Part shown: positions 1 through 39,808 of the stretch, in pieces
Layout: each line of letters opens with the position of its first letter
Position numbering within the stretch: position 1 is the stretch's first letter
Origin: Azolla caroliniana
Taxonomy: Eukaryota > Plantae > Polypodiophyta
Length of the DNA: 64,000 nucleotides
Direction: 5' to 3'
Assembly: GCA_043228905.1 (NCBI GenBank)
Contig: JBHGNT010000018.1
Span: 10,912,001-10,976,000, forward strand
Program-made: the position numbers and the translations under genes
The notes under the pieces: generated by a model
Databases searched by the model: none
Told to the model about the DNA's origin: nothing
What the model saw: the letters and a program-made list of their open reading frames with translations, nothing else

Positions 1-640
1 CCTTCGCACATTGAACCCCAAAATCGAAATGGAAACGTAACACGATCCTCTCCACGGTCGTGGGCACTATAGTGGCCGTGTTGTCGAGTGGAGGTGTCAG
101 CTCGTCACGTGGAATATGCTCTGTGTATGGTGGCCGAAACGTCGGGCTGTTGTTTGGTTGCTTCCATTGTAGTTGGTGGGGTCGAGTCCTCCTGCTCTAT
201 GGTCTACTCCTACGCTTGCTTTGGTGCCATCCCTGTGTTTGCGTCGTCATTGAATTTCTCAAGGAGGTTCCTTGATTGCTGTGGTGTGCGTGCTTGCAAG
301 GGCTTGGAATTCATCGCTGAGGTCTTCCTGTAGGACTTGGATCATGCTTTCGTCCATCTCATAAAATACGCGACTCTTTTTTTTTCGGTTTAGCTCGAAA
401 ATATCGCAATTCAGTTGCTTGGACGAACCATTCTTTCCACCCGTGGGTTAGAGTCTCCTCGACGTTTTGATTAAGCTTTGACCGACGTTGGAAGATGAGG
501 GTTTAGATGCGTGATTTGATCATTTTATCATTAGCCCGTAGGGTTTCTAGTATTTCTTTTGCTAGCTTGGCCTCTATGTGTGATTGGAGTTTGGCGATTT
601 TATACGACTTGGTGACCGTGCTCTATTTTAAATCTAATTC

Positions 641-716
641 ACGCCTGTGGCGTAATGGATAAAGCACTTGACTTCTAATCAAGGGCTTGTGGGTTCGAGT
701 CCCATCGGGCGTGCCA
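641..716 (+). tRNA. tRNA-Arg(UCU)-like gene, near-intact cloverleaf, with genomically encoded CCA (714-716)
   Basis: Acceptor stem ACGCCTG/CGGGCGT, D arm GCGT-AATGGATA-AAGC (1 mismatch), anticodon stem CTTGA/TCAAG with loop CT-TCT-AA, T arm GTGGG-TTCGAGT-CCCAT. 73 nt plus CCA; resembles plant cytosolic tRNA-Arg(TCT). Confidence 0.85.
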
Positions 717-719
717 AAT

Positions 720-1023
720 TGTGTTGTCTTTGCTAATTGGGAGATAATATGGTCAAGGGGTCGTGATACGTAGTGGTGTACAAGAAAGCCAGGAATGCAC
801 AACTAGTTGATTTCAAAACACAGTCGGCCCAAACTGGCCTTGTAAATTATACTTGAAATTAAGATAGCAAATCCAAATAGTACAGATAGATGCTTGAACA
901 GATCAGGTCCATAGAGATAGATATATTAATAGATTTAGGTTCTATGGTTACACGTCCCATGGTTGGAGTTCTATTCTCATACAGTCAAAAGAATAACAAT
1001 AATCCTATCTAGACTAGTGTATA
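720..1023 (-). repeat. LTR-like unit of the tandem element (copy 1)
   Basis: Starts TGTG 3 nt after the tRNA CCA and ends GTGTATA directly before TCTCCCTCTCCCTTT (a PPT on the - strand). Homologous blocks at 2095-2335, 3436-3767, ~4258-4429 and ~5261-5386. Confidence 0.6.
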
Positions 1024-2015
1024 TCTCCCTCTCCCTTTGAGTCTGCTCATTGTTTTATTGGTTCCCTTTTTGCTTGGTGCACTTCAGTCAATACTTTCTT
1101 CTCGGACTTCATTCTTGGTTGCACATATTCCGTTACCTTCCTCATTCTCGGTTGCCCTTTTTCACCTACTTTACCTACTCTTATCTTCATATTCATTTCA
1201 AATTGTATCCCTTTTGTCCCCCAAATAATACCTGGCATAGCCGTGGGATTGTGCCTTCGCATGTCGAACCCCAAAACCGAAATGGAAACATAAAATTGAT
1301 AAGGAGCCGTGACATAATTCTATTGTACACTCAATAAATGTCGAGGATGTCCTTGAAAGGTGGCAACACCATCATCTCCTCAGTCGTGTGCGCTATTGTG
1401 GCTCTTCATGTGGGATTTGTTTGGTGTGTATCCCTGCAAAAACGTGGAGATGTTGTTCGGTAGTGTCCATTGTAGTTGGTGGGGTCGAGGCCTCTTGCTC
1501 TGTGGTCTGGTCCTGCGCTTACTCTGGTGCCATTCCTGTCTTTGCTTCGACCGTCTACCCTTGGGCTGCTTCCTTGAATGCATGCTCGGTTTTGAGCATT
1601 AGCAACAACTGGTTGTCGTTGAATTAATCAAGGAGGTTCCTGATTGTCGTGGTGTGCGTGCTTGGTAGGGCTTGGAATTCGTCGGTGAGGTCTTCTTGGA
1701 GAACGTGAATGCTGGTTTCGTCCATCTTATAAAATCCTTCACCCTCTTTTCTCCGGTTTTTGGCGTCGGCTTGAAAATATTGCAATTCGGCTGCTTAGAC
1801 AAACCATTCTTTCCAACCATGGGCTAGAGTTTCCTTGACCTTTTGATTAAGCTTCGACCGATGTTTGAGGACGAGGGCTCAGATGTGTGTTTCAATCATT
1901 TCATCTTTAGCTTGTAAGGTTTCCAGTTCTTCTTGTGCTTGCTTGGTCTTTATCTATGATTGGATTTTGGCGATTTCATACGACTTGTTGATCGTGCTAG
2001 TCTTAAATTTAATCT

Positions 2016-2091
2016 ATGCCCATGGCCTAATGGATAAGGCACTTGACTTCTAATCAAGGGATTGTGAGTCTGAGTCCCATTGGGCGTGCAA
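2016..2091 (+). pseudogene. tRNA-Arg(UCU) pseudogene, copy 2
   Basis: ATGCCCATGGCCTAATGGATAAGGCACTTGACTTCTAATCAAGGG...TGGGCGTG-CAA; T-loop/B-box mutated (GAGTCTGAGT). Confidence 0.8.
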
Positions 2092-2335
2092 AATTGTACT
2101 TGAAATTAAGATAGCAAATCCAAATACCGTAGATAGATGGTTGAACATATTAGAACCACAAAGATAGATATATTAATAGATTCAGATGCAACATTTAGAT
2201 GGCTAATGGCTGGAGTTCTATTCTCATTGAGATAGATAAAAGTAGACTTCTCTAGAGTAGTGTATATCTCCCTCTCGGCTGGAGTTCTATTCTCATTGAG
2301 ACAGATAAAAGTAGTCTCCTCTAGAGTAGTGTATA

Positions 2336-3356
2336 TCTCCCTCTCTCTCTGCTCCTCATTTTGTTGCTTCCCTTACTTTTTGGTGCGCTTAAGTCAATCC
2401 TTTCTTCTCAGCCTTCATTCTCGGTTGCACATATTCCGTTACCTTCCTAATTCTCAGTGGTTCTTTTTCACCCACTTTACCTACTCTTATCTTTAGATCC
2501 GTTTCAAATTGTATCCCTTTCGTCACACAGATAACACTTGGCATGCGTGTGGAACATTGCCTTCTCACGTCCAACCCCAAAATCGAAATGCAAAAGCTAA
2601 AATTGATCAGGAGACTTGACAGAATTGTACTGTGCACTCAATTTCGTCCAAAATGTTGAGGATATCCTCGGAAGGTGGGAACACGATCCTCTCCTCAGTT
2701 GCAGGCGTTGTAGTGGTTGTGTTGTCCAATGGAGGTGTCGGCTTGTCACGTTGGGTTTGCTCGGTGTATATCGGTGTTGAAACCTCGAACTGTTGTTTGG
2801 TAGCTTCCATTGTAGTTGGTGGGGTCAAGGCCTTATGCTCTGTGGTATGTTCCTATGCTTCCTTTGGTGCCATGCTTGTCTCTGCTTCGTCTGTCTGCCC
2901 CTGGGTTGCTTTCTTGAATGCACGTTCGGTTTCGAGCATTAGCAACAACTGGTCGTCGTCGAATTCCGCAAGGAGGTTCCCGATTGCCGTGGAGTGCATG
3001 CTTTCTAGGGCTTGGCATTCGTCGGCGAGGTCTTCCCGGAGGACTTGGATGCTGCTTTCATCCATTTTATAAAATCCGTGACCCTCTTTTCTCTGGTTTT
3101 CGGCGTCATCTCAAAAATATTGCAATTCGGCTGCTTGGACCGACCATTCTTTCCACTCGTGGGCTAGATTCTCCTCGACCTTTTGATTAAGCTTCGACTG
3201 ATATTTGAGGACGAGGGCTCAGATGCATGTTTCGATCATTTAATCTTTAGCCCGTAGGGTTTCCAGTTCTTCTTTGGCTTGATTGGCCTCTATCCGTGAT
3301 TGCATTTTGGTGATTTCATACGATTTGGTGACTGTGCTAAGTTTTAAATCTAATCC
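2336..3356 (-). pseudogene. Degenerate single ORF (~340 codons) of the tandem unit; unknown coiled-coil/gag-like protein
   Basis: Track ORFs 2853-3065 and 2607-2828 are in one frame, broken by TAA/TGA/TAG stops typical of C>T decay. Homologous pieces occur in other units (1047-1274; 4420-4662 and 4702-4971 in one frame). No RT, integrase or protease motif seen. Confidence 0.55.
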
Positions 3357-3432
3357 GCACATGTGGCCTAATGGATACGACACTTGACTTCTAATATAGG
3401 GATTGTGGGTTCAAGTCCCACAGGACGTGCCT
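3357..3432 (+). pseudogene. tRNA-Arg(UCU) pseudogene, copy 3
   Basis: GCACATGTGGCCTAATGGATACGACACTTGACTTCTAATATAGGGATTGTGGGTTCAAGTCCCACAGGACGTG-CCT; same position in the repeat unit. Confidence 0.75.
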
Positions 3433-3435
3433 AAT

Positions 3436-3767
3436 TGTGTTTCTCTGTCTCGTATCGGAGATAAAACCTTCGTTTACTTCTATGGTAATCGGGTCAAGGG
3501 GTTGTGGTATGTAGTGGTGGACACGAAAGCCGGGAATGCTTTTCGGCTAGCTGATTTTAAAAAACAGTCGGCCACAACCGGCCTTGTAAATTGTACTTGA
3601 AATTAATATAGCAAATCCAAATAACTCAGATAGATGCTTGAACCAATTAGACCCACAGAGATAGATATATTAATTCATTCATATGCAAAGGTTACACGGC
3701 TCATGGCCGGAGTTCTATTCTCATACAGTGAGACAAATAAAAGTAATCCTCTCTAGAAAAGTGCATA
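3436..3767 (-). repeat. LTR-like unit of the tandem element (copy 3, longest)
   Basis: TGTG...GTGCATA termini, flanked by the tRNA/PBS on one side and TTTCCCTCTCCCTCT (PPT complement) on the other. Confidence 0.6.
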
Positions 3768-5386
3768 TTTCCCTCTCCCTCTGATTCTGCTCCTCGTTTT
3801 ATAGCTTCCCTTTTTGCTTGGCATGCTTTAGTCAATCCTTTCATCTCGGCCTTCATTCTCAGCTGCACGTATTGCATTCCCTTCCTTATTCTCGGTTGTC
3901 ATTTTTCACCTACTTTACCTATTCACATATTTAGATTCGTTTTACATTGTATCCCTTTTGTCCCATGGATAACACTTGGCACGCCTGTGGGATAGTGCTT
4001 TCCCATGTGGAACCCTAAAATTGAAATGTAAACGTAAAATTAATAAGGAACTATGACGGAATTACACTGTACACTAAATTTCTTTCAAAATGTTGAGGAT
4101 GTCATCGAAAGGTGGCAGCACGGTCGTCTCCTCGGTTGTGGGCACTATAATGACCGTGTTGTCCAGTGGAGGTGTTGGCTCGTCACGTGGAATATGCTCG
4201 GTGTGGATTGCGGCCGAAATGTCGGGCTGTTGTTGGGTTGCTTCCATCATATTGGTGGGGTCAAGGGGTCGTGATATGTAGTGGTATACAAGAAAGCCGG
4301 GAATGTACGACTAGTTGATTTCGAAAAACAGTCGATAGATTCAGATGCAATGGTTACATGGATCACGATCGTAGTTCTATTCTCATACAGTCAAACAGAT
4401 AACAGTAATCATTTCTAGACTAGTGTATATCTCCCTCTCCCTTTGATTCTTCTCCTTGTTTTATTGCTTCCCTTTCAGTTTGGTGTGTTTCAGTTAATCC
4501 TTTCTTCTTGGCCTTCATTCTTAGCTGCGCGTATTCCGTTACCTTCCCCATTCTCGGTTGTCCTTTTTCACCTACTTTATCTACTGTTATCTTTAGATTC
4601 ATTTCAAATTGTATCCCTTTTGTCCCACGGATAATACATGGCACACACGTTGGACATTGCATTCACAGGTCGAACGCTAGAACTGAAATGGAAACATAAA
4701 ATTAATAAGGAGCCGTGACAAATTCTATTGTACACTCAATTTCCTCCAAAATGTGGAGGATGTCCTCGGAAGGTGGGAGCACTATCGTCTCCTCGGTCGT
4801 GGATGTTGTAGTGGTCGTGTTGTCTAGTGGAGGTGTCGGTTCGTTATGTGGCCTTTGCTCAGTGGGTATCATGGTAGAAACGTTGAGCTGTTGTTCGGTA
4901 GTGTCCATCGTAGTGGGTGGAATCGAGGCCTCCTGCTCAGTGGTCTGCTCCTGCGTTTGCTCTGGTGTCATCCTTGTCTTTGCTTCATACGTCTACCCTT
5001 GGGCTGCTTCCTTGAATGCACACTCGGTTTCGAGCATTCGCAACAACTGGTCGTCGTTGAATTCGTCAAGGAAGTTCCCAATTGCCGTGGTGTGCATGCT
5101 TGCTAGGGCTTAGAATTTGTCGGTGAGGTCTTCCTAGAGGACTTGGTTGTTGTTTCGTCCATCTTATAAAATCCACGACCCTATTTTTTCCTGTTTTCAG
5201 CATCAACTCGAAAATATTGCAATTCCGCCGCTTGGACCGACCATTCTTTCCATGTGGAAATTGTGCTTGAAATTAAGTTAGCAAATCTAAATAACACAGA
5301 TAGATGCGTGAACATATTAGACCCATAGAGATAGATATATTAATAGATTTAGATGCAACGGTTACACGACTCACGACTAGAGTTCT

Positions 5387-6186
5387 GGTTGCCGACTGGA
5401 GAGTGGTCCGAGTTGGAACGTCCTTGATTCCGCTCGGATCGCCGACAAATCTCTTTTCTCTTTATTGACCAGCTATCGGAAACATTGTGGCCAACTTTCT
5501 TGCAGTGTGTGTGTGCAGTACTCGCTTGATCAGGCCGTTTTCGACTTCGACCGTTGTCGGTCTTCCCTCGTTTTTGATCGGTTGTAGTGTCGACTGGTTC
5601 TATTGGCTTGTTCTTTCGTTCGACTTTGTCGGTCGAACGACTCGGTCAAGTGATGGGCTTTTGCCAACTCATCGATGGTTAGTCCCATAGATTTTTGCCT
5701 AATGTCCTTTGTGAGGACTTGGCCGATTGTTTCGTCCAAGTTTAGGATCAGACGCCTATTCACTTATGTCGTGCAGAATACCTCCCAGCTCGCCGGCAAG
5801 CACGATAGGAGGGCAAGGGTTTTCACATCTTGTTCGAAGTTGATCCCTTGTGATGAGAGCTCAGACAACACCCGATTGAAGGTGTTGATGTGGGAGGTTG
5901 CCAGATTGGTCTCTCTCATCTTTATGTGGATTAGTTGTTTGATCAGAATTAGTTTCGAAGATGAGGACTTCTTTTCATAAACGGCCTGTAGCTTCTCCCA
6001 TAATGAGAACACTGTCGTCTCTTTTGCCATTCTAAAATAGACGTTTTCAGCTAGATGCATTCGGATGGTGGAGCGTGCGATTTCGTCCGTTGATCTCCAC
6101 TCCTCGGTTGTCATTGAAGCAGGTTTTTTGTTGTGCCGAATGGCTTCGACCTGTCTTCAAATGATCAACACATCTTGCATCATCTC
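5387..6186 (-). pseudogene. gag: Ty1/copia gag remnant (element G, downstream part)
   Basis: ORF 5764-6114 (EEWRSTDEIARSTIRMHL...LWEKLQAVYEKKS...LALLSCLPASWE) is a UBN2-type copia gag. It joins 25372-25445 across the ATCTC TSD to read KNFALWKEMMQDVLI. Confidence 0.85.
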
Positions 6187-6216
6187 TGTTATGAGAATGA
6201 CCATATAATATCCCGT

Positions 6217-6814
6217 TGTCGAGGTATTCCTCACGGATGCGTGGAATGAGGCGGGACCTCGGGGGTCCTGTACCGAAGAGCAAGAGAGAAAAGAGAAGAG
6301 GCCCACTACGTGCGACCGTAGATTCACAGGGACACGGCCCTTCGACACGAAGACGCGAGTGGGACAGCGACACAGAGAGACACGAATGTATGTATGTATT
6401 AACAAAGACAAACAACAAGACATGAAGTCGGTTACAACCGAACAGGCCGGCGAACAGATGCTGATGCCTGTTCGTAAATGCACAGAAAGGAAAGAGTAGG
6501 TTGGAGGTGCTGCCGGAAGCACTCGGGCTTTCCTCAGAGCAGCACGAGCCTCCCGAAACCTGCACAGCAAGAAGCTACGGAGCTTGCGAGCTAGAGAGAG
6601 AGAGAAGCCTTTGCCCACAAACTGACAACACTTCGTCCTCGACTCTCCGCGATCCCTTCGCCCCTCCTCGTCTCCCTCCTTTTATAGGCAAGGAAGGAGC
6701 CGTTTTCCATTAACTCCCTACCTACTGAGGATCTTCTATGTACAACATTCAAGAAGAGCCGGTTCCTACGCTCCGGCGCACCGATTCCGCTTGTGGACGG
6801 TTTTCTTCACGACA
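6217..6814 (-). repeat. 3' LTR of element A
   Basis: Highly similar to 11484-12087. Confidence 0.93.
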
Positions 6815-6887
6815 TTCGCCCCCACCTAACCGCGCATCCACCGGCATGCGCCAAATTGAGTTGGGACGGAGAAAACTGGTCCAGCCT

Positions 6888-8852
6888 TCATTCCCCGCCC
6901 GTCGGTTCTTCCTCGGTTTCGGATCGTTCGTCGTCGTAGTCCAGGTCAACTGGATCCGGCTCGTCGTCGTGACGCTTCCTGAACGCTTTGATCCGCTTCC
7001 CAGCTACCGGTATCGCCATTCTCGTACCGTCGAGTTCCGCCAGATGGTACATCCCGTTGTCGTTGGCGCTTTGTACCACGTAAGGCCCGAACCACCTTCT
7101 TGTAAACTTCCGTGTCGCTCGATGCTGATTGTTGAGGCTGCTGTCGTAGACTAGCACCCAGTCGCCTTCCTCGATCTTCTTCGGTCGGAGCCGGTGCGTT
7201 CGGTCGAACCGTGCTTTGTTCCTCGTCCTTGCCACCCGAAGCTTTTCCGCAGCCTGCTCCACGTCCTCCAGTCTTCGCTCAAGTTGTCGTATGCGCGCCG
7301 TCAACAGTTCCTCCCGGCTCATCTCGTCTCTCCAGTCCACGGTTGCCCACGAGGAGATTGTACGTTCCATCGGCATGACTAGCTTCTGCCCAAACATGAG
7401 CTCTGCCGGCATGAATCCGGTTACCGAACTGTGCGTAGTTCGGTCAGCCCACAACGCGTAAGGCAGCAACCGCGGCCAGTTCCCAACTTGCCCCCCGCAT
7501 GCTCGAACTAACGCCTTGACGATCGGTCTGTGTCCGCGCTCCACCTTCCCATTCGCCTCCGTATTGTACGCAGTGGTAAGCGAGAGCTTGACTCCTAGCT
7601 GGTCGAACAACTCCTCGGCCTCTTCGGCGTCCAACTCCCCGCGATCAGCCACGATCTTCCCGACGCACCCGTACCGGCATATCACGTCCTCGATCAGGAA
7701 CCGGCATACGGCTGCAGTCATTTTGTTCTGAAGGGCTCGGCCTTCCACCTGGTTCGTCAGATCTTCCCGAGCCAGGACCAGATACCGCATTTGTCCTACT
7801 CCCATCGGCATCGTCACCAGATCTACCATCCATTTGAAGTGGATGGTCGGGGGGTACGTAGGGTGAAGCTCGTCCCGATGTCGGACTACGGAGTGCATCT
7901 GACAGCTCTCGCAAGTTGTCACGAACCGATGCACGTCCCGGTACAATCCCGGCCACCAGTATTTCCCCTTTATCTTCTCGAACGTGGCCCACGTTCCACG
8001 GTGTCCAGCCCAAGGGCTGTCGTGGTAGGCCGTCAGCAGCTTCTCCTGTTCTTCCTTCATCGCCACCACCCGGAGCGGGACGCCGTTCCTCTTCTTCGGG
8101 TGCTTCCATAAGTATCCGTCCCGGAGAAAGAATCGGTAAGCTTTCTTCCGGATCCGGTTGGCCTCGTCCTTCGTCCATGACGCATCCGGCGTCATTGTCC
8201 TCAAAAATCCACCGATCTGGAGCCACTCGCCGTCGTACTTGCTCTCGTCGAAGTCGTTAAGTGCCGGAGTGCTCGTCCCATCGGTCGTCACGTACGCCGC
8301 CTCGAAGAAGTCCACGTTGACTTCTTCGTCCTCCGAAACCATGCCGCCCTCGTCATCAAACCTCGCCCTCGAAAGCATGTCGGCCATGGCATTGTCCTTT
8401 CCGGAAATGTGCCGTATTTCCGGATCCAGGGACTTGATGTACGCTATCCACCTGAGCATCGCCAGGTCCGGTGTCGCGCATCCGGAAACCATGCCGAGGA
8501 TTGGCAGGCAATCCGTCTCGATAATCACTTCCGTCCCGATCAGGTAGTCTTTGTCGGCCTTTACTGCCGAAACGATACCCCAGAGTTCGCGTTTAACCTG
8601 GGCGTACCCTCGCTGTCGCTCACTGAGGAGCTTCACGCCGAATCGGATCGGGAACCGAATGCCGTCCTTGTCTTCTTGGTTGACGACCCACCCGATCCTG
8701 GTCGGGCTCGTATCCACCGTCATGTATACCGGGGTACCCTTCTCGTAGACAGCCTTCCGGAGCGCCGGTGCTGCTGCAAGAGCTTCCTTCAGCTTCCGGA
8801 CCGACTCCGTGTGCTCGTCTCGCCACTCGAATTTTCGCCCTTTCTTCAGCAA
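6888..8852 (-). CDS. pol: Element A pol: RNase H + integrase
   Basis: RNase H (TVDTS...KRELWGIV...ETDC), HHCC zinc finger (YHDSPWAGH...CESC), DDE core (VDL...VADRG...GKVER) and GPY/F motif. A frameshift near 8915 separates it from RT. Confidence 0.9.
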   Translation of the reverse strand: MLKKGRKFEWRDEHTESVRKLKEALAAAPALRKAVYEKGTPVYMTVDTSPTRIGWVVNQEDKDGIRFPIRFGVKLLSERQRGYAQVKRELWGIVSAVKADKDYLIGTEVIIETDCLPILGMVSGCATPDLAMLRWIAYIKSLDPEIRHISGKDNAMADMLSRARFDDEGGMVSEDEEVNVDFFEAAYVTTDGTSTPALNDFDESKYDGEWLQIGGFLRTMTPDASWTKDEANRIRKKAYRFFLRDGYLWKHPKKRNGVPLRVVAMKEEQEKLLTAYHDSPWAGHRGTWATFEKIKGKYWWPGLYRDVHRFVTTCESCQMHSVVRHRDELHPTYPPTIHFKWMVDLVTMPMGVGQMRYLVLAREDLTNQVEGRALQNKMTAAVCRFLIEDVICRYGCVGKIVADRGELDAEEAEELFDQLGVKLSLTTAYNTEANGKVERGHRPIVKALVRACGGQVGNWPRLLPYALWADRTTHSSVTGFMPAELMFGQKLVMPMERTISSWATVDWRDEMSREELLTARIRQLERRLEDVEQAAEKLRVARTRNKARFDRTHRLRPKKIEEGDWVLVYDSSLNNQHRATRKFTRRWFGPYVVQSANDNGMYHLAELDGTRMAIPVAGKRIKAFRKRHDDEPDPVDLDYDDERSETEEEPTGGE

Positions 8853-10390
8853 CCCGTATAGCGGCTCCGCAACGTGGGCGTAATGCGGGATCCATATGTG
8901 GTAGAACGCGCATGCCCCAGGAACCTCCGAATTTCCGTAACCGAGCTACAGTCGGTCTTCATCGCGGAGATGGCTTCTACCTTTGCCGGAGACGGCTTCC
9001 GGCCATATGGTCCACATAGGTGTCCGACCACCAGGATTTCTGATTGCCCGAAGGCCGATTTCTCCCTGGAGAAGGTGAGCCTCGCATCCTCTAGCCTTTG
9101 TAGCACCTTCTCGCAGTCGTCGATGTGTGCTGCCACGAATCGCCGGCATTCGTCCGGCCCGAGTGTCTCGTCCTTCTCTTCCACCGGGCACCCCTTGATC
9201 GAGATGTCGTCTAGAAACGGCATGGTGATGTCCGGGATGCAATCCCTCAGTACCTTGTTCATTGCATTCACCATGTGGGCCATCGAGTTGGTCCCTCCTT
9301 GTGGCAGGGTACACATTCGCACTAGGCCGAGGGGAGTTCGCATCGTCGTAATGTCTCTGCTCTCCACGGCTAGCTGGAACTGGTCGTACCCTGAGTATAG
9401 ATCACCGACCGAGTAAATAGACCTTCTGGCGAAGGCCTCCGCGAACTCGTCTATGGTCGGTCCGATTCCTGCGTTCCGAATGGTCACTCTGTTGACCGGC
9501 TGCAGGTCTTGAATGAAGCGCATCGTTCCGTTTTTCTTTGGTACGGTAAACCATCTGTTCGAGTATGGGGCACTCGACGGTTCGAGAATGCCCATATCCA
9601 CTTTCTGCCTCAATAGCTCCATCAACTTCGGGATGTGAGCTCTCGGTACCGGAATCGGCTTGAGATTCCACGGCACATGCGGTATCGTGAATATCACCAT
9701 CGGCTCCACGATCGTCGGGTCTACGCACCCGATCTCTTCCGGTGAGAATGCGAAGGCCTTTCCGTGCCTTCTGAGCATTCTCCGAAACCGGTCTTCCTCC
9801 GCCGGCAGTAGGAACCTGCCCCCACCGATCTTGAGCTCCCGGAGCGTCCCGTCGGTGAAGGTGTGTCCTATGTAGGCCGGATCTCGTAAACTGGGGTCCG
9901 ACGCAACCCCTTTGATTCGGGACTCGCTGCCCTCCGGTAAGGGTGCCGCGACCGGCCTTACCTTCCGGTCCATAGTCTTGTACTTCGTGCTAACTTGGGC
10001 CGTCCGATCCGACCCGAGCCCCCGACTGAAGTTCGCGATGACTTCGTACATCTCTTCGGAACATACCGGTATCGTCCGGTCTTCGTTAAGGTCTTCTCCG
10101 GCTACCTCCCTCAGCATTCCCAGGGTGTTGTCGAAGGAGACCGCCTCCACGGCTCCGCTGATTTCCTCGTCCGGGCCGAGAACTCCGCACGCTCGAAGTC
10201 GCACTTCCGCCCTTGTCTTTTCTCGGCCAACGATGCTGACTATCATACACCCTCCGTTGTTGGAGAAGAAAAATTTCCTACCTATCGTACAGGGTCCCTT
10301 CGGTTTCGGTTCTATCGTACAATCGTGGGGTCTTTCCCGAGTGTCCGGACTATCTCGGCCCCACGCCTTGGCAGCCCTCTCTAAAAATCC
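8846..10390 (-). CDS. pol: Element A pol: reverse transcriptase (frame open up to the slippery site at 10390)
   Basis: RT motifs DLYSGYDQF, LPQG and PFLDD. Track ORF 8846-10246 is stop-free upstream to 10390, in the -1 frame relative to gag-PR. Confidence 0.9.
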   Translation of the reverse strand, partial: GFLERAAKAWGRDSPDTRERPHDCTIEPKPKGPCTIGRKFFFSNNGGCMIVSIVGREKTRAEVRLRACGVLGPDEEISGAVEAVSFDNTLGMLREVAGEDLNEDRTIPVCSEEMYEVIANFSRGLGSDRTAQVSTKYKTMDRKVRPVAAPLPEGSESRIKGVASDPSLRDPAYIGHTFTDGTLRELKIGGGRFLLPAEEDRFRRMLRRHGKAFAFSPEEIGCVDPTIVEPMVIFTIPHVPWNLKPIPVPRAHIPKLMELLRQKVDMGILEPSSAPYSNRWFTVPKKNGTMRFIQDLQPVNRVTIRNAGIGPTIDEFAEAFARRSIYSVGDLYSGYDQFQLAVESRDITTMRTPLGLVRMCTLPQGGTNSMAHMVNAMNKVLRDCIPDITMPFLDDISIKGCPVEEKDETLGPDECRRFVAAHIDDCEKVLQRLEDARLTFSREKSAFGQSEILVVGHLCGPYGRKPSPAKVEAISAMKTDCSSVTEIRRFLGHARSTTYGSRITPTLRSRYTGC

Positions 10391-11467
10391 TCCTGGTTCT
10401 CGCCACCGAGGGATTCGCGGTTTTGCTCGTGGTTCGGTCGCACCGTCAAAAATTGGACCGAATGGCGCCCATCCTGGCTTTTGACCCTCGCGTAGGCCGA
10501 ACCGTTGTCTAGCACCTTGGTCTCCATCCGCGCCGCCGTGATGTATGGTTCCCCTAAAATGACCGGGTGCGAGGACGTCTCCTGTACGAAGAAGTGCTGG
10601 TCAATCTCGACGTCGCCGATCTTGACTCGCACGTTCGGGCAGGCCCCATGCAGTTCCTCGGTGGCGCGCGTCGCCGCCCGTATCTTCCACCCGTGCTTGG
10701 TGTTGATCGGCCACTTTCCCTTCTTATAGAAGTCCATGGACATTAGGTTTATTTCCGAACCGTGGTCCACCAATGCCACCACCGGTTCCTGAACATCTCC
10801 GATCTTCACCGGGGTCTTCGTGGTCACTCGGGCCCAGTGCGGCCTTGAATAGTGGCTCTCCGCCCACTCATCTTCCAGCGCCATGTCGTCGATGTACGTC
10901 GTCCGCACCTCCACCGGTCTTTCCGGTTCCGTCTCCGTCGACAGCCTCTTCCGTTTCACCAGGTCCACAATGGAGTCATGGAACTCCTTCTTGGCGATCC
11001 CTAGCACCTCCCGCAATGACAGCTCCACTTTGTTCCCGGAGGAGTGCCGACGCGTTTCTTCCCTTGCCGGGGGACTCCACCCATTCCATGAAGTCCCGTT
11101 TCGAAAGCCGGAGCGCGTCGTCCAACCCGTATTTTTCTAGGAGTCGGCCTTCGAACTCCTCCCAGGTACGGCTCTCTGCTCGCACCTCGAGCACCTCCGT
11201 ATGGATGCTCGACATCGCCACTCGAGGAAACAAGGCAAGACGCCTCTCTTCCGGAATGTCCTGCATCAGCATTTCTGCCCCGTAGGATGCCAAATACTTC
11301 GTGGCATCCTTTCCGCTGAACCGGCCGATCGTACCGACAACCGCCTCAATGGCTCTGTCGAGGGCGCTGGTGCCCTCGCGTGCACTCAATATCCGATCCA
11401 CGACCGAAGCCATGGCCTCTGCAAGATCCGACCCCTTCATCTTCTGCTCTTCTGCCGCCTTCTTCAC
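10381..11467 (-). pseudogene. gag: Element A gag-protease with internal deletion
   Basis: ORFs 10976-11467 (gag N-terminus) and 10381-11028 (protease LVDHGSEINLM...ILGEP). Compared with D, roughly 1 kb of central gag including the CCHC knuckle is missing near 11030. Confidence 0.85.
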
Positions 11468-11480
11468 GTCGGGTTCACCA
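11463..11480 (-). promoter_or_regulatory. Primer-binding site complementary to the tRNA-Trp 3' end (element A)
   Basis: TGGTGAACCCGACGTGAA on the - strand, 3 nt from the LTR; identical in D at 39783-39800. Confidence 0.85.
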
Positions 11481-11483
11481 AGA

Positions 11484-12087
11484 TGTCGAGGTATTCCTCG
11501 CGGATGCGTGGAATGAGGCGGGACCTCGGGGGTCCTGTACCAAAGAGCAAGAGAGAAAAGGAGAAGGGAAGAGACCCACTAGGTGCGAGCGTAGATTCAC
11601 AGGGACACGGCCCTTCGACACAAAGACGCGAGTGGGACAGCGACACAGAGAGACACGAATGTATGTATGTATTAACAAAGACAAACAACAAGACACGAAG
11701 TCGGTTACAACCGAACAGGCCGGCGAACAGATGCCGATGCCTGTTCGTAAACGCACAGAAAGGAAAGAGTAGGTTGGAGGTGCTACCGGAAGCACTCGGG
11801 CTTTCCTCAGAGTAGCACGAGCCTCCCGAAACCTGCACAACAAGAAGCTACGGAGCTTGGGAGCCAGAGAGAGAGAGAAGCCTTCGCCCACAAACCGACA
11901 GCACTTCGTCCTCGACTCTCCGCGATCCCTTCGCCCCTCCTCGTCTCCCTCCTTTTATAGGCAAGGAAGGAGCCGTTTTCCATTAACTCCCTACCTATCG
12001 AGGATCTTCTATGTACAACATTCAAGAAGAGCCGGTTCCTACGCTCCGGCGCACCGATTCCGCTTGTGGACGGTTTTCTTCACGACA
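11484..12087 (-). repeat. 5' LTR of element A
   Basis: TGTCGAGG...CACGACA; paired with 6217-6814. Confidence 0.93.
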
Positions 12088-12585
12088 CCGTCGTGAGAAT
12101 TTATCGTAGTATTCTATACATGTGGATGAGTGTGTGTCAGGAATAGTACTAAAACAGAGATGGAATTAGTACTAAGAACAACAGTACTATTAGTACTAAG
12201 AGGACGGGACTGCGTAAGATTCCCGAGAGAGGAAGTGAGAAGAGGAGAGAGAGAGAGATAGCGAGAATGAGAGAGAGAGAGAGATGATGACAGCAGCTAA
12301 TATATTATGTGAGAAGATAAGTACAAGCGGCTAAGAGGCTTAAGACTGGCGTTGAACCAATTTGGTTCAAAACAATGCCTTGTGCCTCCTTTTATAGTGT
12401 TTTTAGGAATAATCCTGAAGCTTCTAGAATGTTCCAGAGAGATCTGGAATATACATCAATTTTCTATGATAAAGTATAAATGAAAATAATATCCTACAAA
12501 ATACAATTCATAATCTAATGGTAAGAGCTCGACCCATGTAGCATAAAGTCATGGGTTCGAGTTTTGCCATGACACTATCTCCCCC

Positions 12586-17075: not shown

Positions 17076-19395
17076 TTACTAATAGTACTAATAGTACTGC
17101 TGTTCTTAGTACTAATTCCATCTCTGTTTTAGTACTATTCCTGACAGTTTGAACCAATTTGGTTCAAAACAATGCCTTGTGCCTCCTTTTATAGTGTTTT
17201 TAGGAATAATCCTGAAGCTTCTAGAATGTTCCAGAGAGATCTGGAATATACATCAATTTTCTATGATAAAGTATAAATGAAAATAATATCCTACAAAATA
17301 CAATTTATAATCTAATGGTAAGAGCTCGACCCATGTAGCATAAAGTCATGGGTTCGAGTCTTGCCATGACAGTGTGAGGGTTAAACGAGAGTGTAAAGAA
17401 GGGGAGGATTACTTTTAATCCTCGTGATTGAGACAACCCATTAGGCCAAGTGTTAAATTGCTTGGGGGGCCTTGGGTATCGCTATAAATAAGAGGCCTAG
17501 CTACCCTCATTTCATCATCTTTTGACTACGTCAAGACTCTGTTTCGTAGTGGTTCAACTCTTGTAGCGAGCGCGCCAGCAACAAGTACGACTCGACGCCA
17601 CGGTGGTGGTATGGGACGCCGATCGAGGCTTGAGTCCGTCTCAATCCCATCACTCGAGGGTGGTCGGGTGGATCGGCACCCTTATTTCTCTCTCTCCTTT
17701 CTATCTATCTATCTATCATTCTTTTCTCCTTATCATACGCTTAGATTAGATCATATCTCTAATAATTGGTTTCAGAGCTCATTTTCTAATGTTTCTTTTG
17801 TTGTCTTTTGTCTTCTTGATTCATGGTGATCGATCGATGTGTGGTTGGCCTTGATCCAGACAACGATCAACAAAGGAACTTCGGTAATCTTTCTTGTTTT
17901 TTTTTCTATTTTTTCTTCGCCCTTCTAATCATGTATATGGTCATATGTAAATTTTTTTCCCATTGATTCAATGATGTTGTAGTGGTAATTAATTGGTTAT
18001 ATAAAATGTTTACATATGTGCACGAGGTCAATACCTCATTTGACATATATTTAATATGTGATTAGTGTCATATGCATACGAGGTTAATACCTCAATTATG
18101 TATTACGTTCACAAACATATGTTACGTTTGCGTATGAGGTCATTACCTTGATTTGTATGTAAATGATATGCGTTTGGTGTCGTATGGGTATGAGGTCAAT
18201 ACCTCAATTGCGTATTACGATTAACCCTTATTTTTAGATGTTTCGTGTGCGTAGAGGGTATATGTCTCGATTACGTATCTCGATTACATTATTTTGGGCT
18301 ATTTTATATTACGATTTCTTTTATATATGCATATGCGGTCACGTCTATACGTATTTGATCGTATATATGTGATAATATACATATGTGTATATAAGTTATT
18401 ACATGATTTCAATATTGAATGTTTTCCTTTTCGGGGAAAGGATCTTGGTGGCCATCCTCACATTTTTGTGAGAATGACGTTGTCACCATCCCTTTTTCAA
18501 CAAATTTTTGTTGTTGAAATCCCCGTTGGTGACTTCGATTTCGTTACGTAATGAAACAATCTTAGCCACAATGGTGTTGAGAACATAGGGCTGAGGTTGC
18601 TCTTATGACACACATATCCAACATCTATCCCTCAGTACATGGATATGATGCCACCATGAGATCATTCTTACAAAAGGCATTCATAATGACGTAACAATGT
18701 GATGGGCCATGTGGACCTACTACAAAAAGAGGGCTCATTTGGCTTGAGCATTAGGTTGCACTTTGGCGTATGCCATCGTAATTACGAGACTTGAGGTTAG
18801 GTAACGTTGCAACAAAGTTTGTGGTGAACGAGGGGGAAATAAGGACTCTTGACATATATGTTTCTTTTAAAAAAACATATATGGGCAAATGCCTCGCATA
18901 TCTCTTATACACATTAAATATTAAATATTTAAGAAGAGCAACCTACTTGGTTGGCTCAAGTGTTTAATGCATTTGTTCTCGAGGTCTCGAGTTCAAATAT
19001 GACCAAGATCATAAAGCATTGTTGATACATAAGACTATAACATGTGTTTAGACTTGAGGTCTAAGTGCACTTCGGGGTCCTCGTAATAGGACTTGAAGAG
19101 CCGAAACTACATATGTGGGCACCGAAACATAGTTTATTGTTAACATTTTTTTTGTGTATAAACTATTCATGACATGAACATACATGGTTGAGCCTCGGGG
19201 AGCCGCCATGAAAAAATCGATATAGAGATAAGGGAAAGACATTAATTTGTCACCCCCATGGTTTTTAAAACACCTTTGTGTTACCATAGTAACCTGATCT
19301 TTAACCTCATCTCATACGTTTAGAGGGGTATTTACGTGAGATCATGATATCGATTAATGTTTACCCGTGATATGTTTACATCATGACGTGATGTT

Positions 19396-34061: not shown

Positions 34062-37000
34062 TCAATTAGATTCCTCCATGTCTTCATTTTCATCCGGCCT
34101 ATTATGTTCATCGTCGAGGTAATCGAGGTCAGGATCCTTGTCTTGTCTTTTCTTGAAAATCTTTACTCTTTTTCCTGCAATGGGTACGGCCAACCTTGAT
34201 CCGTCTAGTTCCGCAAGGTGGTATGTGGCATTATCGTTGGCACTTGTCACCACATACGGCCCGAACCATCTTCTTGCGAACTTCCTTGTTGTACTGTGTT
34301 GATTGTCAAGGGTGCTGTCGTAAACCAAAACCCAATCCCCTTCTTCAATCTTCTTGGGACGAAGTCGATGCGTGTTGTTGAACCGAACTTTGTTCTTTAC
34401 TCGGGCCGCCTTCATCATCTTTCGCGCTTTTTCTAAATCTTCAGGTCTTCTTTCAAGTTGCCTTATCCGCGCCGCTAATAACTCTTCTCGGCTCATCTCG
34501 TTCTCCCACGGTATCGCTACCCATGAGGCGATCGTCCTTTCGATGGGCATAATCGGCTTTTGTCCATACATAAGCTCCGTCGGCATATACCCTGTCACCG
34601 AGCTATGTGTCGTTCTATCGGCCCACAAGGCATAGGGTAATAGTCGTGGCCAATTCCCGACTCGACCGTTGCATGCCCGTACGATGGCTTTAACGATAGG
34701 TCCATGCCCTCGCTCGATCTTCCCATTTGCTTCCGGATTGTAGGCAGTCGTGAGGGAGAGCTTCACGCCTAGTCTTTCGAAGAGCTCCGTCGCTTCGTGC
34801 GCGTCCAACTCCCCTCGGTCGGCCACTATCTTCCCTACACATCCATATTGGCAAACAACATCTTCAAGTAGAAATTTGCAAACGGCTGAAGTCGTCTTAT
34901 TTGTCAAGGCTCGTCCTTCCACTTGATTTGTCAAGTCTTCCCTTGCCAACGCTAAGTACTTCATTTGTCCCACTCCCATTGGCATCGAGACCAGATCCAC
35001 CATCCATTTGAAGTGTATGGTGAGTGGGTATGTCGGCTTTAACTCATCACGATGACGTATATTTGAATATACTTGGCAAGTTTCGCATGTGGACACGAAA
35101 TGGAGTACATCTTTGTACATGCTTGGCCACCAGTACTTCTCCTTCAACTTTTCGAACGTCGCCCATGTTCCTCTATGACCTGCCCAAGCACTCTCGTGGA
35201 ATTCGGTCATCAGCGTCTCTTGCTCTTCTTTCTTTACTACCACTCGTCGTGGTATTCCTGTCCTTCTTTTTGGATGTCGCCAAAGGAATCCTCCCTTCAA
35301 GAAGTATCGGTAAGCTTTCTTTCGGATTCGTAGGGCCTCCTCCTTTGTCAACGAAGCATCTGTCGTCAATGTTCTTAGGAATCTACCGATGAGTAACCAT
35401 TCTCCTTCGTACTCGTTCTCGTTGAAGGCGTGGAGGGTTTGCGTGTCCTGGTCTTCCGTCGACAATCGAGCCATCTTGAAGAAGTCGAGGGCGACATCTT
35501 CATCTTCCGAAACCATGTTACTTCCGTTTGAAAATCTTGCCCTCAACAGCATGTCAGCCATGGCGTTCTTCTTCCCTGCAATGTGACGGATCTCTGGGTT
35601 TAAAGACTTGATGTAGGCGATCCACCTTAGCATAGCAAGATCTGGGGTCGCACATCCCGAGACCATTCCGAGAATTGGGAGACAATCTGTCTCTATTATC
35701 ACTTCTGACCCGATCAGGTAATCTTTGTCCGTCTTCACTGCCGACACAATACCCCAAAGTTCCCGCTTGACTTGGGCATATCTTTGTTGTCATTCGCTGA
35801 GAACCTTTGCTCCGAACCGGACGGCATATCGCGCATTATCTTCACCTTCTTGATTGATGACCCACCCGATTCCGGTTGGGCTCGTATCTACGGTCACGTA
35901 AATTGGTTTCCCTTCGGCATAGTCGGCCTTCCTTAGTGCCGGAGCTTCAAGAAGTAGTTTCTTTAATCTTCGCATCGCCTCTGTGTGCTCGTCTCGCCAT
36001 TCGAACTTTATTCTTTTCTTTAGTAGTCCATATAACGGTTCGGCGACATGAGCGTAGTGAGGAATCCATATATGATCAAACGCGCATGCTCCAAGGAACC
36101 TTCGAACCTCCGTTTGGTTTTCGCATTCTTCTTTCATGTCTTGGATTGCGTTCACTTTGGATGGCGAGGGCTTCCGGCCGTATGCTCCACACAAGTGACC
36201 TACCACCAAGATCTCCGGTTGCCCGAATGCGGATTTTTCTCCCGAAAATGTCAAATTCGCATCTTCGAGCCTTTGAAGCACCTTCTCGCAATCTTTCATA
36301 TGATTCGCAACGAACTTTCTACAACCTTCCTTATCTTTCGATTCATCTTTCTCCTCATCCGAACATCCTTTTATCGGAATATCATCCAAGAATGGCATCG
36401 TGATGTCCAGAATGCAATCCTTCAAGACTTTATTCATGGCATTCACCATATGAGCCACCGAGTTCGTTGCGCCTTGGGGTAAGGTACACATCCGCACAAG
36501 CCCGATCGGAGTCCTCATGGTTGTAATGTCCCGATTGTCGATCGCCAATTGGAATTGGTCATATCCGGAGTAGAGATCGCCAATGGAGTAGATGGACCGG
36601 CCCGCAAACGCTTCGGCAAATTCGTCCACGCTCGGACCGATTCCGGCATTTCGAATTGTCACCTTGTTGATGGGTTGAAGATCTTGGATGAATCGCAATG
36701 ATCCATTCTTCTTCGGCACCGTGAACCACCTATTGGAATAAGGAGCATTCGACGGTTCTAGAATTCCCATACTCACCTTCTCCTTTAAGAGCTCGATCAG
36801 ATTCGGAAGGTGTGCTCTCGGAACCGGTATCGGTTTCAAGTTCCAAGGCACATGAGGTACCGTGAAGATCACCATCGGCTCTATAACCTTTGGGTCGGCG
36901 CATCCGATTTCTCGTGGGAAGAATGCGAAAGCCCTCCCATGTCTCTCAAGCATATCGCGAAACATTCGGTCCTCTTCAGGGAGAAGGAAATCCTCCTTTC

Positions 37001-37556
37001 CAACTCGTAGCTTCCCCTTCGTCTCTTTGGTGAAGACATGACCTATCTTCTTCGGATCTCTTAAGCTTGGATCGTTAGCGACTTCCTTCATCTTTTGCCA
37101 GCTATCTTCCGGTAGCGGAACCGCAACTGGCTTGATCTTCTTATCCACCGTTTTATATTTCGTGTTGATGTCAGCTTCCTTCATCGAGATGCCACGACGG
37201 TATTCATCGATGATAGCGTACATGTTGACGGAGTTAACCGAAATCACGCGTTGGTTGTGAAGATAGCTCAAGTCCACGACGTCCTCGATTTCGCCGATGG
37301 TGTCGTTAAATGAGGCTTCTTCCATAATATGAGTCACGAACTCTCCTTCTTCTATTATATTCTCTTCTTTCAGCATCTTCTCGAATTCTTGTATCCGGCG
37401 CTTGTGCTTCTTGTCGGGTAGTACTAGTTTACATGCGCCACTAGGTGTGACACATGTTGCTTCTCCTTGCAATCCACGCATTCTTCTTTCTTGTGGGGTC
37501 TTGTGATTGCTCGGACTATTTGTGCCCCATGCTTCAATAGTCCGCTCTAAAAATCC
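34062..37556 (-). CDS. pol: Element D pol (RT-RNase H-integrase), one premature stop at 35790
   Basis: ORFs 35790-37481 (PFLDD) and 34062-35747 (HHCC, DDE, GPY) are in one frame, separated by a TGA; the frame is open up to the slippery site at 37556. Confidence 0.92.
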
Positions 37557-39746: not shown

Positions 39747-39808
39747 GTATTAATCTCGACTTGATCCTTCCTACCGCCTCGTTTCACGTCGGGTTCACCA
39801 CTTGATTA

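Follow-up and report, generated by a model that had tools for sequence, protein, structure and literature searches.

A tandem array of a decayed Ty3/gypsy derivative with a whole tRNA-Arg(UCU) complement at its primer-binding site, a probable fossil of primer read-through

Introduction

A tandem array at one end of the window (the whole 64,000-nt stretch of DNA that was analyzed) consists of units in which the primer-binding site (PBS) of an LTR element is replaced by the complement of an entire tRNA-Arg(UCU), including its CCA end. The array is probably a dead, tandemly amplified and internally deleted Ty3/gypsy derivative that originated through read-through of the primer tRNA and an aberrant second jump. 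A preliminary description of this DNA had reported three units containing a full tRNA-Arg(UCU) followed by CCA, CAA or CCT, then AAT and TGT, all of which was recovered, and had placed the element on the minus strand, which is borne out by the frame of its internal region and by the layout of its relatives. The more important result concerns those relatives, a diverse gypsy lineage in which a conserved, covarying, CCA-ending mimic of tRNA-Arg lies at the edge of U3, where no polypurine tract (PPT) is found.

Organization of the array

The array occupies positions 1-5386 of the window with a period of ~1340 bp, and its units repeat on the plus strand only (Table 1). They are ~80% alike and differ by several deletions; three of the five hold a full tRNA-Arg(TCT), which units 4 and 5 have lost. 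Three independent public DNA data sets contain near-identical contigs, and the metagenome contig L002 is 93.7% identical to the array, so the array is not an assembly artifact. In the public contigs it extends leftward beyond the window (joint 4659->1). Contig counts in three genome data sets indicate that the unit-specific parts are low-copy, and the stretch at 3956-3998, covering the LTR start and the mimic, is common to many genome contigs.

Table 1. Features of the tandem array, in window coordinates.
Position	Strand	Feature	Support or remark
1-22	-	Partial tRNA-Arg 3'-part mimic, in a unit cut by the left edge of the window	Aligns with 1254-1293, 2560-2599, 3998-4037, 4660-4699 (family D12)
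23-640	-	Decayed C-terminal piece of the 3' extra ORF; forms the internal region in unit 1	Frame common to units, with stops
641-716	+	tRNA-Arg(TCT) copy 1, encoded CCA; minus strand is the 76-nt PBS	ARAGORN; Rfam 58.6 bits; 70/76 vs L004
717-721	-	Spacer between LTR end and PBS, minus-strand CAATT	Same junction in L016, L054, L076, L091
722-1230	-	LTR copy 1; begins with a decayed TGTT at 1230 and finishes with ..AACA at 722	Mimic on one side, PBS on the other, as in relatives
1233-1278	-	tRNA-Arg(TCT) 3'-part mimic, 2 nt before LTR	83-copy metagenome alignment; hairpin covaries
1279-2015	-	Extra-ORF tail piece, unit 2	
2016-2091	+	tRNA-Arg(TCT) copy 2; CAA replaces CCA; T-arm damaged	ARAGORN 2016-2089; Rfam 52.7 bits; 67/76 vs L004
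2097-2536	-	LTR copy 2; ~125 bp lost at PBS-side end; 69-bp duplication at 2208-2345	
2539-2582	-	Mimic, unit 2/3 boundary	Metagenome mimic alignment
2583-3356	-	Extra-ORF tail piece, unit 3, best kept; ~265 codons, 5 stops	
3357-3432	+	tRNA-Arg(TCT) copy 3, decayed; CCT replaces CCA	No ARAGORN call; Rfam 19.8 bits, partial; 65/76 vs L004
3438-3974	-	LTR copy 3, TGTTATCC...AACA, best kept	
3977-4020	-	Mimic, best-kept copy, ..TCCCACAGGCGTGCCA-AG-TGTT	Metagenome mimic alignment
4021-4636	-	Unit 4: short piece of the extra ORF fused to LTR remnants; lacks the tRNA and the PBS side	
4639-4683	-	Mimic, unit 4/5 boundary	Metagenome mimic alignment
4684-5386	-	Unit 5: extra-ORF tail, then LTR remnant from 5253; tRNA deleted; array ends within LTR	

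LTRs, spacer and primer-binding site

LTR copies of ~510-540 bp and their remnants alternate with internal regions. The best-kept copy has inverted TG..CA termini on the minus strand, and relatives carry TGTT..AACA; its start, TGTTATCCATGGGACA, compares with TGTTGTCCATGGGACA in L009, L016 and L091. The preliminary description had delimited an LTR block of ~300 bp ending at a PPT. The minus-strand polypurine run that it used, AAAGGGAGAGGGAGA at 1038->1024, is real and recurs in other units, but it lies ~195 nt inside the LTR, so that 1023/1024 is no LTR edge. Directly upstream of the 3' LTR start, the place of a PPT is taken by the end of the mimic, ..GGCGTGCCA-AG.

At the opposite LTR end, the tRNA lies exactly at the primer-binding position, as had been proposed. 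The junction ..AACA-CAATT-TGGCACGCCCG is common to the array and to L016, L054, L076 and L091, and one family of relatives has both the LTR termini of the array and its CAATT spacer. The tRNA-Arg(TCT) complement that follows CAATT extends for 76 nt in the array as opposed to 10-14 nt in relatives, ending after 13 nt in those with array-like LTR termini and junction. The LTRs of the array itself are known from the tandem array only; no single two-LTR copy of the exact family with a target-site duplication was found among the sequences compared. The array begins beyond the left edge of the window and is truncated on the right at 5386. Nor was an autonomous partner with the same LTR body found among these sequences, the match to relatives being limited to termini, spacer and PBS type. 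When the region past the tRNA was compared with the other LTR end as a possible inverted copy, the match consisted of the tRNA 3' end alone and scores fell within the range of shuffled sequences.

Internal region

The internal region retains a minus-strand frame that belongs to a real protein family. The segment 2856-3110 (minus strand) has 117 protein relatives and matches residues 896-956 of a 1103-amino-acid ORF (P0118) with 48% identity (E=7e-15). In L001, this ORF is flanked by integrase and gag, and all three share one strand. No Pfam family matched the six minus-strand ORF pieces or the long relatives P0067 and P0118, and P0034 and P0076 proved to be low-complexity false matches. A search for homologues of the L076 gag returned ENA metagenome proteins only. 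These features refine the initial view of a mini LTR element: the unit is small, non-coding and non-autonomous, but it is an internally deleted gypsy derivative that keeps just the tail of the extra ORF.

A gypsy lineage with a tRNA-Arg mimic

The lineage is defined here, from L001, L076 and L094, by a tRNA-Arg mimic preceding the 3' LTR. Its layout in L001, L076 and L016 consists of the extra ORF, the mimic, 2 nt, an LTR (TGTT..AACA), a spacer, a tRNA-Arg PBS of 10-14 nt and gag, and every one of these parts is found in the same order on the minus strand of the array, which places the array in this lineage. The mimic comprises ~44 nt that resemble a T-arm with an inserted hairpin and the 3' strand of the acceptor stem, and it terminates in CCA 2 nt before the LTR; in relatives, 335-560 nt separate this CCA from the PBS. 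Element genomes of the lineage contain two tRNA-Arg(UCU)-like stretches each. L094, a single example, shows that the mimic is internal and outside the LTR: unrelated DNA precedes its 5' LTR (647-1137), and the mimic followed by GG precedes its 3' LTR (1750-2235).

The mimic alignment comprises 83 distinct metagenome copies; about 30 of the 120 matches in the metagenome scan were bacterial chance matches and were left out, and a scan of viral contigs returned phage or chance matches only. The hairpin covaries in this alignment, with its structure specified by hand and with counts that related sequences can inflate, and RNAalifold applied to the same alignment did not recover it. In the literature searched, which did not cover most subscription journals, no description was found of a mimic-bearing lineage or of a tRNA-like module that replaces the PPT.

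The location of the mimic in the place of the PPT raises the question of how plus-strand synthesis is primed in these elements. A tentative possibility, on present evidence rather doubtful, is that the array is the fossil of a lineage that primes both strands from 3' ends in ...CCA, with tRNA-Arg at the PBS for the minus strand and, for the plus strand, a second tRNA-Arg(UCU) or an RNA of the mimic annealed to the mimic copy 2 nt before U3, and with whole-tRNA derivatives such as the array and L004 as recurrent by-products. On their other strand, the whole-tRNA derivatives display a layout of tRNA, CCA and antisense U5 that has been proposed for proto-SINEs.

The presence of tRNA-related sequence on both sides of an LTR with inverted termini (TGTT..AACA) also means that geometry alone is symmetric. 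The array could accordingly be read on the plus strand, with the full tRNA as an enlarged mimic before an LTR starting at 722 and TGGCACGCCTG at 3977 as the 5' PBS. This model is rejected from the orientation of the ORF and of the mimic and from the LTR terminal motifs, and is extremely improbable: the minus strand carries the extra-ORF piece, with ORF, mimic and LTR in canonical order; the stretch adjoining 3977 shows, in minus orientation, the T-arm and hairpin that belong to the mimic; and the U3-start motif is at the mimic side, with AACA-CAATT-TGG at the tRNA side.

Decay of the tRNA-Arg(TCT) copies

Three full-length copies of the tRNA remain, each abutting extra-ORF sequence and spanning exactly G1 to A76, the CCA position included. 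The nucleotides 3' of the discriminator base are CCA-AAT-TGTG, CAA-AAT-TGTA and CCT-AAT-TGTG in copies 1, 2 and 3, respectively, giving an encoded CCA as the consensus of the three. ARAGORN recognized the first two copies only, and the Rfam score of copy 3 is below the 29-bit tRNA threshold. Identity between units is 0.77-0.86 in the tRNA part and 0.80-0.82 in the flanks; the tRNA copies decay neutrally, at the rate of their flanks, and are not under purifying selection. An intact cloverleaf under such selection, as in a functional tRNA-Arg(UCU) gene, is not present among them, and, unlike nuclear tRNA genes, they have an encoded CCA and no T-run terminator close by. Host tRNA-Arg(TCT) genes, compared together with their flanks (public contigs with loose ends at 704, 714 and 3421), have different 3' sequences, with neither an encoded CCA nor a flank of the CCA-AAT-TGTG type.

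These data bear on the earlier suggestion that the antisense tRNA is retained by the element as a functional Pol III gene, which would be a source of its own primer, of new tRNA genes or of PBS-blocking fragments. The cloverleaf of copy 1 still folds, its A and B boxes are recognizable and A/T-rich sequence lies upstream of it, and the recurrence of whole-tRNA capture in the lineage (L004, below) could also be taken in favor of such a gene. The tRNA part nevertheless diverges as fast as its flanks, the T-arm of copy 2 is broken, copy 3 has lost its cloverleaf, units 4 and 5 lack the tRNA, and the first run of at least four T residues is found 337, 268 and 108 nt downstream of copies 1, 2 and 3. 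The host, moreover, has tRNA-Arg(UCU) genes of its own. The one possible RNA data set (X13) gave four short, poorly matching contigs, none over the tRNA or the LTR; these have no bearing on expression, and the lack of a contig over the tRNA is weak evidence against the gene. A maintained gene is therefore very unlikely, and the gene-like tRNA on the plus strand is most likely a by-product.

Plants have tandem tRNA gene arrays with units of ~1.5 kb, which might suggest segmental amplification of an ordinary nuclear tRNA-Arg gene, or the chance insertion of an LTR element beside such a gene. Either course of events would have to accommodate an encoded CCA, an LTR terminus at PBS distance on one flank and a retroelement ORF on the other, host tRNA-Arg genes with other flanks and tRNA copies free of purifying selection, and we consider it barely credible.

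A second whole-tRNA derivative and the origin of the array

Another element of the lineage, L004, contains an intact 76-nt tRNA-Arg(TCT) complement that meets the extra-ORF tail at another point than in the array; the mimic and the LTR follow. It is apparently a second full-tRNA deletion derivative, independent of the array. In both cases, tRNA nucleotide 1 is precisely where the deletion starts, and comparison of the tRNA/extra-ORF junctions of L004 and the array revealed no homology above that of shuffled sequences. If capture does recur, the lineage may tolerate or even favor long tRNA complements, which would not be predicted by a model of pure accident.

Retroviral plus-strand strong-stop synthesis normally halts at m1A58 or m5Um54 of the primer tRNA. 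Where the stop is lacking, plus-strand cDNA runs on and loses the complementarity needed for the second (plus-strand) transfer (PMC8599865). The array tRNA encodes CCA and extends exactly from G1 to A76, which points to a read-through copy of a mature tRNA, in keeping with what the preliminary description had proposed. The parental element would have had the normal order of the lineage: 5' LTR, tRNA-Arg PBS of 10-14 nt, gag-pol, long 3' extra ORF, CCA-ending mimic, 2 nt and 3' LTR. In one replication cycle, plus-strand strong-stop synthesis would have continued unhalted through the tRNA-Arg(UCU) primer to nucleotide 1, leaving a 3' end unfit for the normal PBS-guided second jump. This end may instead have landed within the extra ORF on minus-strand DNA, yielding a product composed of LTR, 76-nt tRNA complement, extra-ORF tail, mimic and LTR. 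A single event of this kind would account for the complete tRNA as well as for the absence of gag-pol. Unequal LTR-LTR recombination could then have built the array of alternating LTRs and internal regions, which afterwards decayed neutrally. We infer the read-through and a microhomology jump from their product, the parental junction sequence not being at hand.

Alternatively, the full tRNA could have been acquired by template switching or recombination of a short PBS, or of the mimic, with a tRNA or a tRNA retro-copy, the internal deletion being a separate and later event. Reverse transcriptases switch templates often, and the two tRNA-Arg(UCU)-like stretches in each element genome offer homology for copy choice. 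The tRNA is, however, antisense to the element and separated from the LTR end by a spacer of canonical length, as expected of a copied, attached primer, whereas a switch at the mimic would yield a sense tRNA before the LTR; and two separate events are difficult to reconcile with deletions that start from tRNA nucleotide 1 in the array as well as in L004. This route is unlikely, and primer read-through with an aberrant jump is preferred.

Comparison with known systems

With its LTR, spacer and whole-tRNA complement, the array resembles a product of primer read-through. The read-through described for HIV-1 is a dead-end laboratory intermediate (PMC8599865), whereas in the array an aberrant jump presumably rescued the product, which became part of a plant-like genome and was inherited and amplified there. 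No natural element with a full-tRNA PBS was found in the literature, coverage of which was incomplete and lacked most subscription journals. Integrated, inherited elements with a whole primer tRNA at the PBS would be rare natural records of the stop of plus-strand synthesis within the primer and of the consequences of its failure, a step otherwise studied with retroviruses in vitro and in mutant cells. The occurrence of two apparently independent cases within the lineage suggests that the stop is leaky for tRNA-Arg(UCU) in the host or with the reverse transcriptase of the lineage.

Like tandem arrays of LARD and TRIM elements, the array lacks gag-pol and has a short internal region and alternating LTRs, and its mobility would depend on a partner, but it differs from them in its 76-nt PBS and in having no PPT at the LTR edge. 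It also exceeds the size of TRIMs, here taken as LTRs of ~100-250 bp in an element of less than ~1.5 kb, since its LTR measures ~510-540 bp and LTR, internal region and LTR together ~1.85 kb. Cassandra TRIMs carry 5S rDNA in their LTRs, conserved throughout the family. The array shares with Cassandra the presence of Pol III-type gene sequence in a small LTR element, yet its antisense tRNA is located at the PBS and not within the LTR, is lost from two of the five units and decays neutrally, no better conserved than its flanks.

Ty3, with its bipartite PBS, and Ty1, with CYC5/CYC3, have 3'-terminal helper sites; those of Ty3 show complementarity to the primer tRNA. The mimic of the lineage is likewise conserved and tRNA-related, and it occupies the 3'-terminal part of the internal region, next to U3. 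It differs from the Ty3 sites in having the same sense as the tRNA, in ending with CCA 2 nt before U3 and in occupying the place of the PPT.

A strong-stop-DNA model for the origin of tRNA-derived SINEs was reportedly put forward by Ohshima and Okada in 1993. The plus strand of the array has the layout of that model: tRNA, CCA, a short spacer and antisense U5-R. By comparison with a tRNA-derived SINE, the array shows no SINE tail or target-site duplication and no sign of Pol III transcription or SINE-like dispersal of the unit; its flanks are an LTR and a retroelement ORF, and its copies are members of an array. Its succession of tRNA, CCA and antisense LTR also illustrates concretely the intermediate that has been postulated in the emergence of tRNA-derived SINEs.

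The Array and Its tRNA-Arg Copies

A tandem array with a period of ~1340 bp, on the + strand only, extends from the left edge of the window, which already lies inside it, to position 5386. The array is genuine DNA rather than an artefact of assembly, since contigs nearly identical to it occur in each of three public DNA data sets that are independent of one another, and a metagenome contig, L002, shares 93.7% identity with unit 3. Contig counts indicate low-copy unit-specific parts and ~10–20 variants of the LTR block, although Logan contigs give no real copy numbers. The presence of a full tRNA-Arg in three units, claimed in the preliminary description, was confirmed by ARAGORN, Rfam and alignment of the copies, which are followed by CCA, CAA and CCT, respectively, and then by AAT and TGT in each. 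The array end abuts a copia-type gag-like fragment (5387–6216, minus strand, recognized by eye on its translation) into which gypsy element A is inserted, making this edge a nested-transposon region.

Features of the array, of neighboring elements and of related contigs
Feature	Position	Strand	Remarks
tRNA-Arg(tct) copy 1	641–716	+	ARAGORN; Rfam 58.6 bits
tRNA-Arg(tct) copy 2	2016–2089	+	ARAGORN; Rfam 52.7 bits
tRNA copy 3	3357–3432	+	aligns with copies 1 and 2; Rfam only 19.8 bits
Mimic copies	1233–1278, 2539–2582, 3977–4020, 4639–4683	minus	~44 nt, ending CCA
Element A	6217–12087	minus	gypsy; PBS TGGTGAACCCGACGTG 3 nt after LTR; 4-bp duplication ACGG
Element D	32905–40904	minus	gypsy; PBS TGGTGAACCCGACGTG 8 nt after LTR; gag region matches DUF4100
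P0118 (extra ORF)	L001:1769–5080		between integrase and mimic; relatives P0067, P0007, P0023
L004 full tRNA-Arg(TCT) complement	1190–1265	+	76 nt, cloverleaf intact; mimic at 708–767 (minus)

Reading Strand and LTR Limits

Each unit contains a second tRNA-Arg site ~515 bp to the right of the tRNA (+ strand ..ATAACA-CT-TGGCACGCCTGTGGGA.. at 3977–3992; at 1233, 2539 and 4639 in other units), in which TGGCACGCCTGTGGGA complements the 3' end of tRNA-Arg(TCT). Because each ~510-bp block has tRNA-Arg sequence at both sides, with the CCA ends pointing to the block, geometry alone has no power to decide the reading strand. The internal region, on the minus strand, contains one frame common to the units and interrupted by stops. 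For an 85-aa piece of it (2856–3110, minus), a search of 1.8 billion representative proteins gave 117 relatives; the piece aligns with residues 896–956 of P0118 (48% identity, E=7e-15), a 1103-aa example of the long 3' extra ORF of this gypsy lineage, which matched no Pfam family. The internal region of the array is the decayed tail of such an extra ORF.

Contig L001, which contains P0118, carries on one strand integrase, extra ORF, ..CTGTGGGTTCGAAGTGCAACGCACTTTCCCACGGGCGTGCCA-TG, LTR, spacer, PBS TGGCGACCACG and gag; CTGTGGGTTCGAAGTGCAACGCACTTTCCCACGGGCGTGCCA begins right behind the extra-ORF stop codon, TG then precedes the LTR, and the LTR is ~365 bp long (TGTTGG...ACAACA). The order is the same in L076, with a 13-nt PBS of tRNA-Arg(TCT) type, TGGCACGCCCGGT, and, ~190 nt beyond it, a gag that contains a zinc knuckle. 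Extra-ORF homology in identical orientation also lies, in 16 further contigs, a few hundred bases upstream of the mimic module, a stretch that resembles the 3' part of tRNA-Arg(UCU) and stands just before the LTR. The ORF frame and these layouts bear out the minus strand first proposed for the element, on which the order is extra-ORF tail, mimic, AG, LTR, CAATT, tRNA complement and then the following unit's extra-ORF tail.

LTR copy 3 starts with TGTTATCCATGGGACA on this strand, and the LTRs of L009, L016 and L091 with TGTTGTCCATGGGACA. The array LTR ends at ..AACA-CAATT-TGGCACGCCCG; the junction in L016, L054, L076 and L091 is ..AACA-CAATT-TGGCACGCCCGGT, diverging from the array beyond, and supports the earlier placement of the tRNA at the PBS position. 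The distance from the mimic CCA to the PBS is 335–560 nt in relatives and ~515–545 nt in the array. From these shared termini and distances, the LTR comprises ~722–1230 in unit 1 and 3438–3974 in unit 3 and replaces the ~300-bp block proposed previously; the supposed polypurine tract, a run at 1038->1024 (minus) found in every unit, sits ~195 nt within the LTR. Within LTR copy 2, a 69-bp tandem duplication (2208–2345, 95% match) has doubled the internal polypurine run. No relative with the same LTR body was found; in host data sets, 3956–3998 (LTR start plus mimic) is all that many contigs have in common, the pattern that a module shared by many families would give.

The tRNA Copies Are Probably Not Working Genes

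The preliminary description proposed that the tRNA was kept as a Pol III template that could supply the element's own primer, which is most likely wrong. Pairwise identity is 0.86, 0.80 and 0.77 in the tRNA part vs. 0.80–0.82 in the flanks, and copies 1, 2 and 3 differ from the intact tRNA of metagenome contig L004 at 6, 9 and 11 positions. The T-arm is damaged in copy 2, acceptor and anticodon-stem pairing are gone in copy 3, and the tRNA is deleted from units 4 and 5. The first run of at least four T residues lies 337, 268 and 108 nt downstream of the copies. Nothing in identity, copy damage, T-runs or host flanks indicates selection for Pol III function. Amplification of an ordinary tRNA-Arg gene also fails as an explanation, since host tRNA-Arg(TCT) genes, read from many contigs whose loose ends lie at 704, 714 and 3421, have unrelated flanks and no CCA; this comparison, set beforehand as a refuting test, left the view of an element-borne tRNA standing.

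A tRNA-Like Module in Place of the Polypurine Tract

Scanning metagenome contigs for CCCACNGGCGTGCCA, 2–4 nt and TGTT yielded 120 loci (L003–L122), about 90 of which are plant-retroelement-like, with 83 distinct copies of a single module (consensus GTGGGTTCGA-[CGTGC AAG GCACT]-GTCCCAC(R)GGCGTGCCA). The module equals the last 35 nt of tRNA-Arg(UCU) plus a small hairpin in the T-loop, minus one base at the T-stem/acceptor junction. Comparison of families shows covariation in the hairpin stem: one pair is UA in 48 copies but GC in 33, and the next is GC in 62 but AU in 18. The covariation score was 0.203 vs. 0.090 in shuffles (0/500 reached 0.203) and 0.036–0.084 for slid partners, in sequences that are related and whose 3' module part is fixed by the search pattern; RNAalifold did not recover the hairpin from the mimic alignment.

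The module often lies directly behind a stop codon and is followed by 2 nt and then the LTR. In many gypsy families this conserved mimic occupies the place where a polypurine tract is expected. L094 contains a small two-LTR element (647–2235; LTRs ~490 bp, ~90% alike) in which the mimic precedes the 3' LTR, not the 5' LTR; no recognizable tRNA PBS was found behind its 5' LTR, and the flanking pentamers differ. Seven loci combine a UCU-type mimic with a PBS for another tRNA, TGGCGACCACG, which may resemble tRNA-Arg(UCG/CCG). The mimic is thus more than a mere complement of the PBS in the same element. A CCA-ended primer 2 nt before U3 would be the mirror image of the PBS arrangement beside the other LTR. 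We hypothesize that the plus strand could be primed by tRNA-Arg(UCU) on minus-strand DNA, or by mimic RNA, a scheme for which we found no published description.

Gypsy elements A, B and D of the window carry ordinary purine-rich tracts ahead of their 3' LTRs; A and D are related, share a PBS, and have G-rich tracts. The LTRs of element B (12352–12574 and 17149–17371, minus) start with TGTCATGGCAAGACTCGAACCCATG, similar to the complement of a tRNA 3' end. Elsewhere, in retrotransposon-rich surroundings, a stretch of 255 bp (24258–24512, +) matches bacterial-type small-subunit rRNA (119 bits, model positions 44–395) and is possibly an organelle-derived insert.

Origin of the Full tRNA

The spacer that separates the tRNA complement from the LTR end is of canonical length. 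The complement extends from G1 to A76 with the CCA included and borders on sequence that stems from the final ~270 codons of the extra ORF; neither gag nor pol nor the remaining extra ORF is present. Plus-strand strong-stop synthesis copying the entire primer would give exactly LTR, spacer and tRNA complement. If synthesis in HIV-1 does not halt at positions 58 and 54, cDNA runs on and complementarity for plus-strand transfer is lost (PMC8599865). The read-through 3' end may have landed illegitimately inside the extra ORF on minus-strand DNA, which would rescue the molecule and delete all sequence in between. Judged from the product, primer read-through followed by such a landing is the most likely source of the full tRNA, and the earlier suggestion of a mature tRNA copied by read-through is upheld on its PBS-distance start and G1–A76 extent with CCA.

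L004 strengthens this origin. Its tRNA complement opens a ~470-nt internal region consisting of an extra-ORF tail, a different and shorter part than that of the array (ending ..EDILGILEED*), behind which lie mimic, TG and LTR. Next to the tRNA, L004 and the array are no more similar in sequence than shuffles are, and we accordingly take them for separate events; the deletion nevertheless begins exactly at tRNA nucleotide 1 in each.

The array is a non-autonomous LTR element, tandemly amplified and now decaying, that most likely fossilized a whole primer tRNA. The preliminary interpretation holds for strand, PBS position and read-through copy but not for LTR size, polypurine tract or function. 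The array is chiefly of value as a natural record of read-through of the primer; it also points to the unusual module that stands in for the polypurine tract in its lineage.
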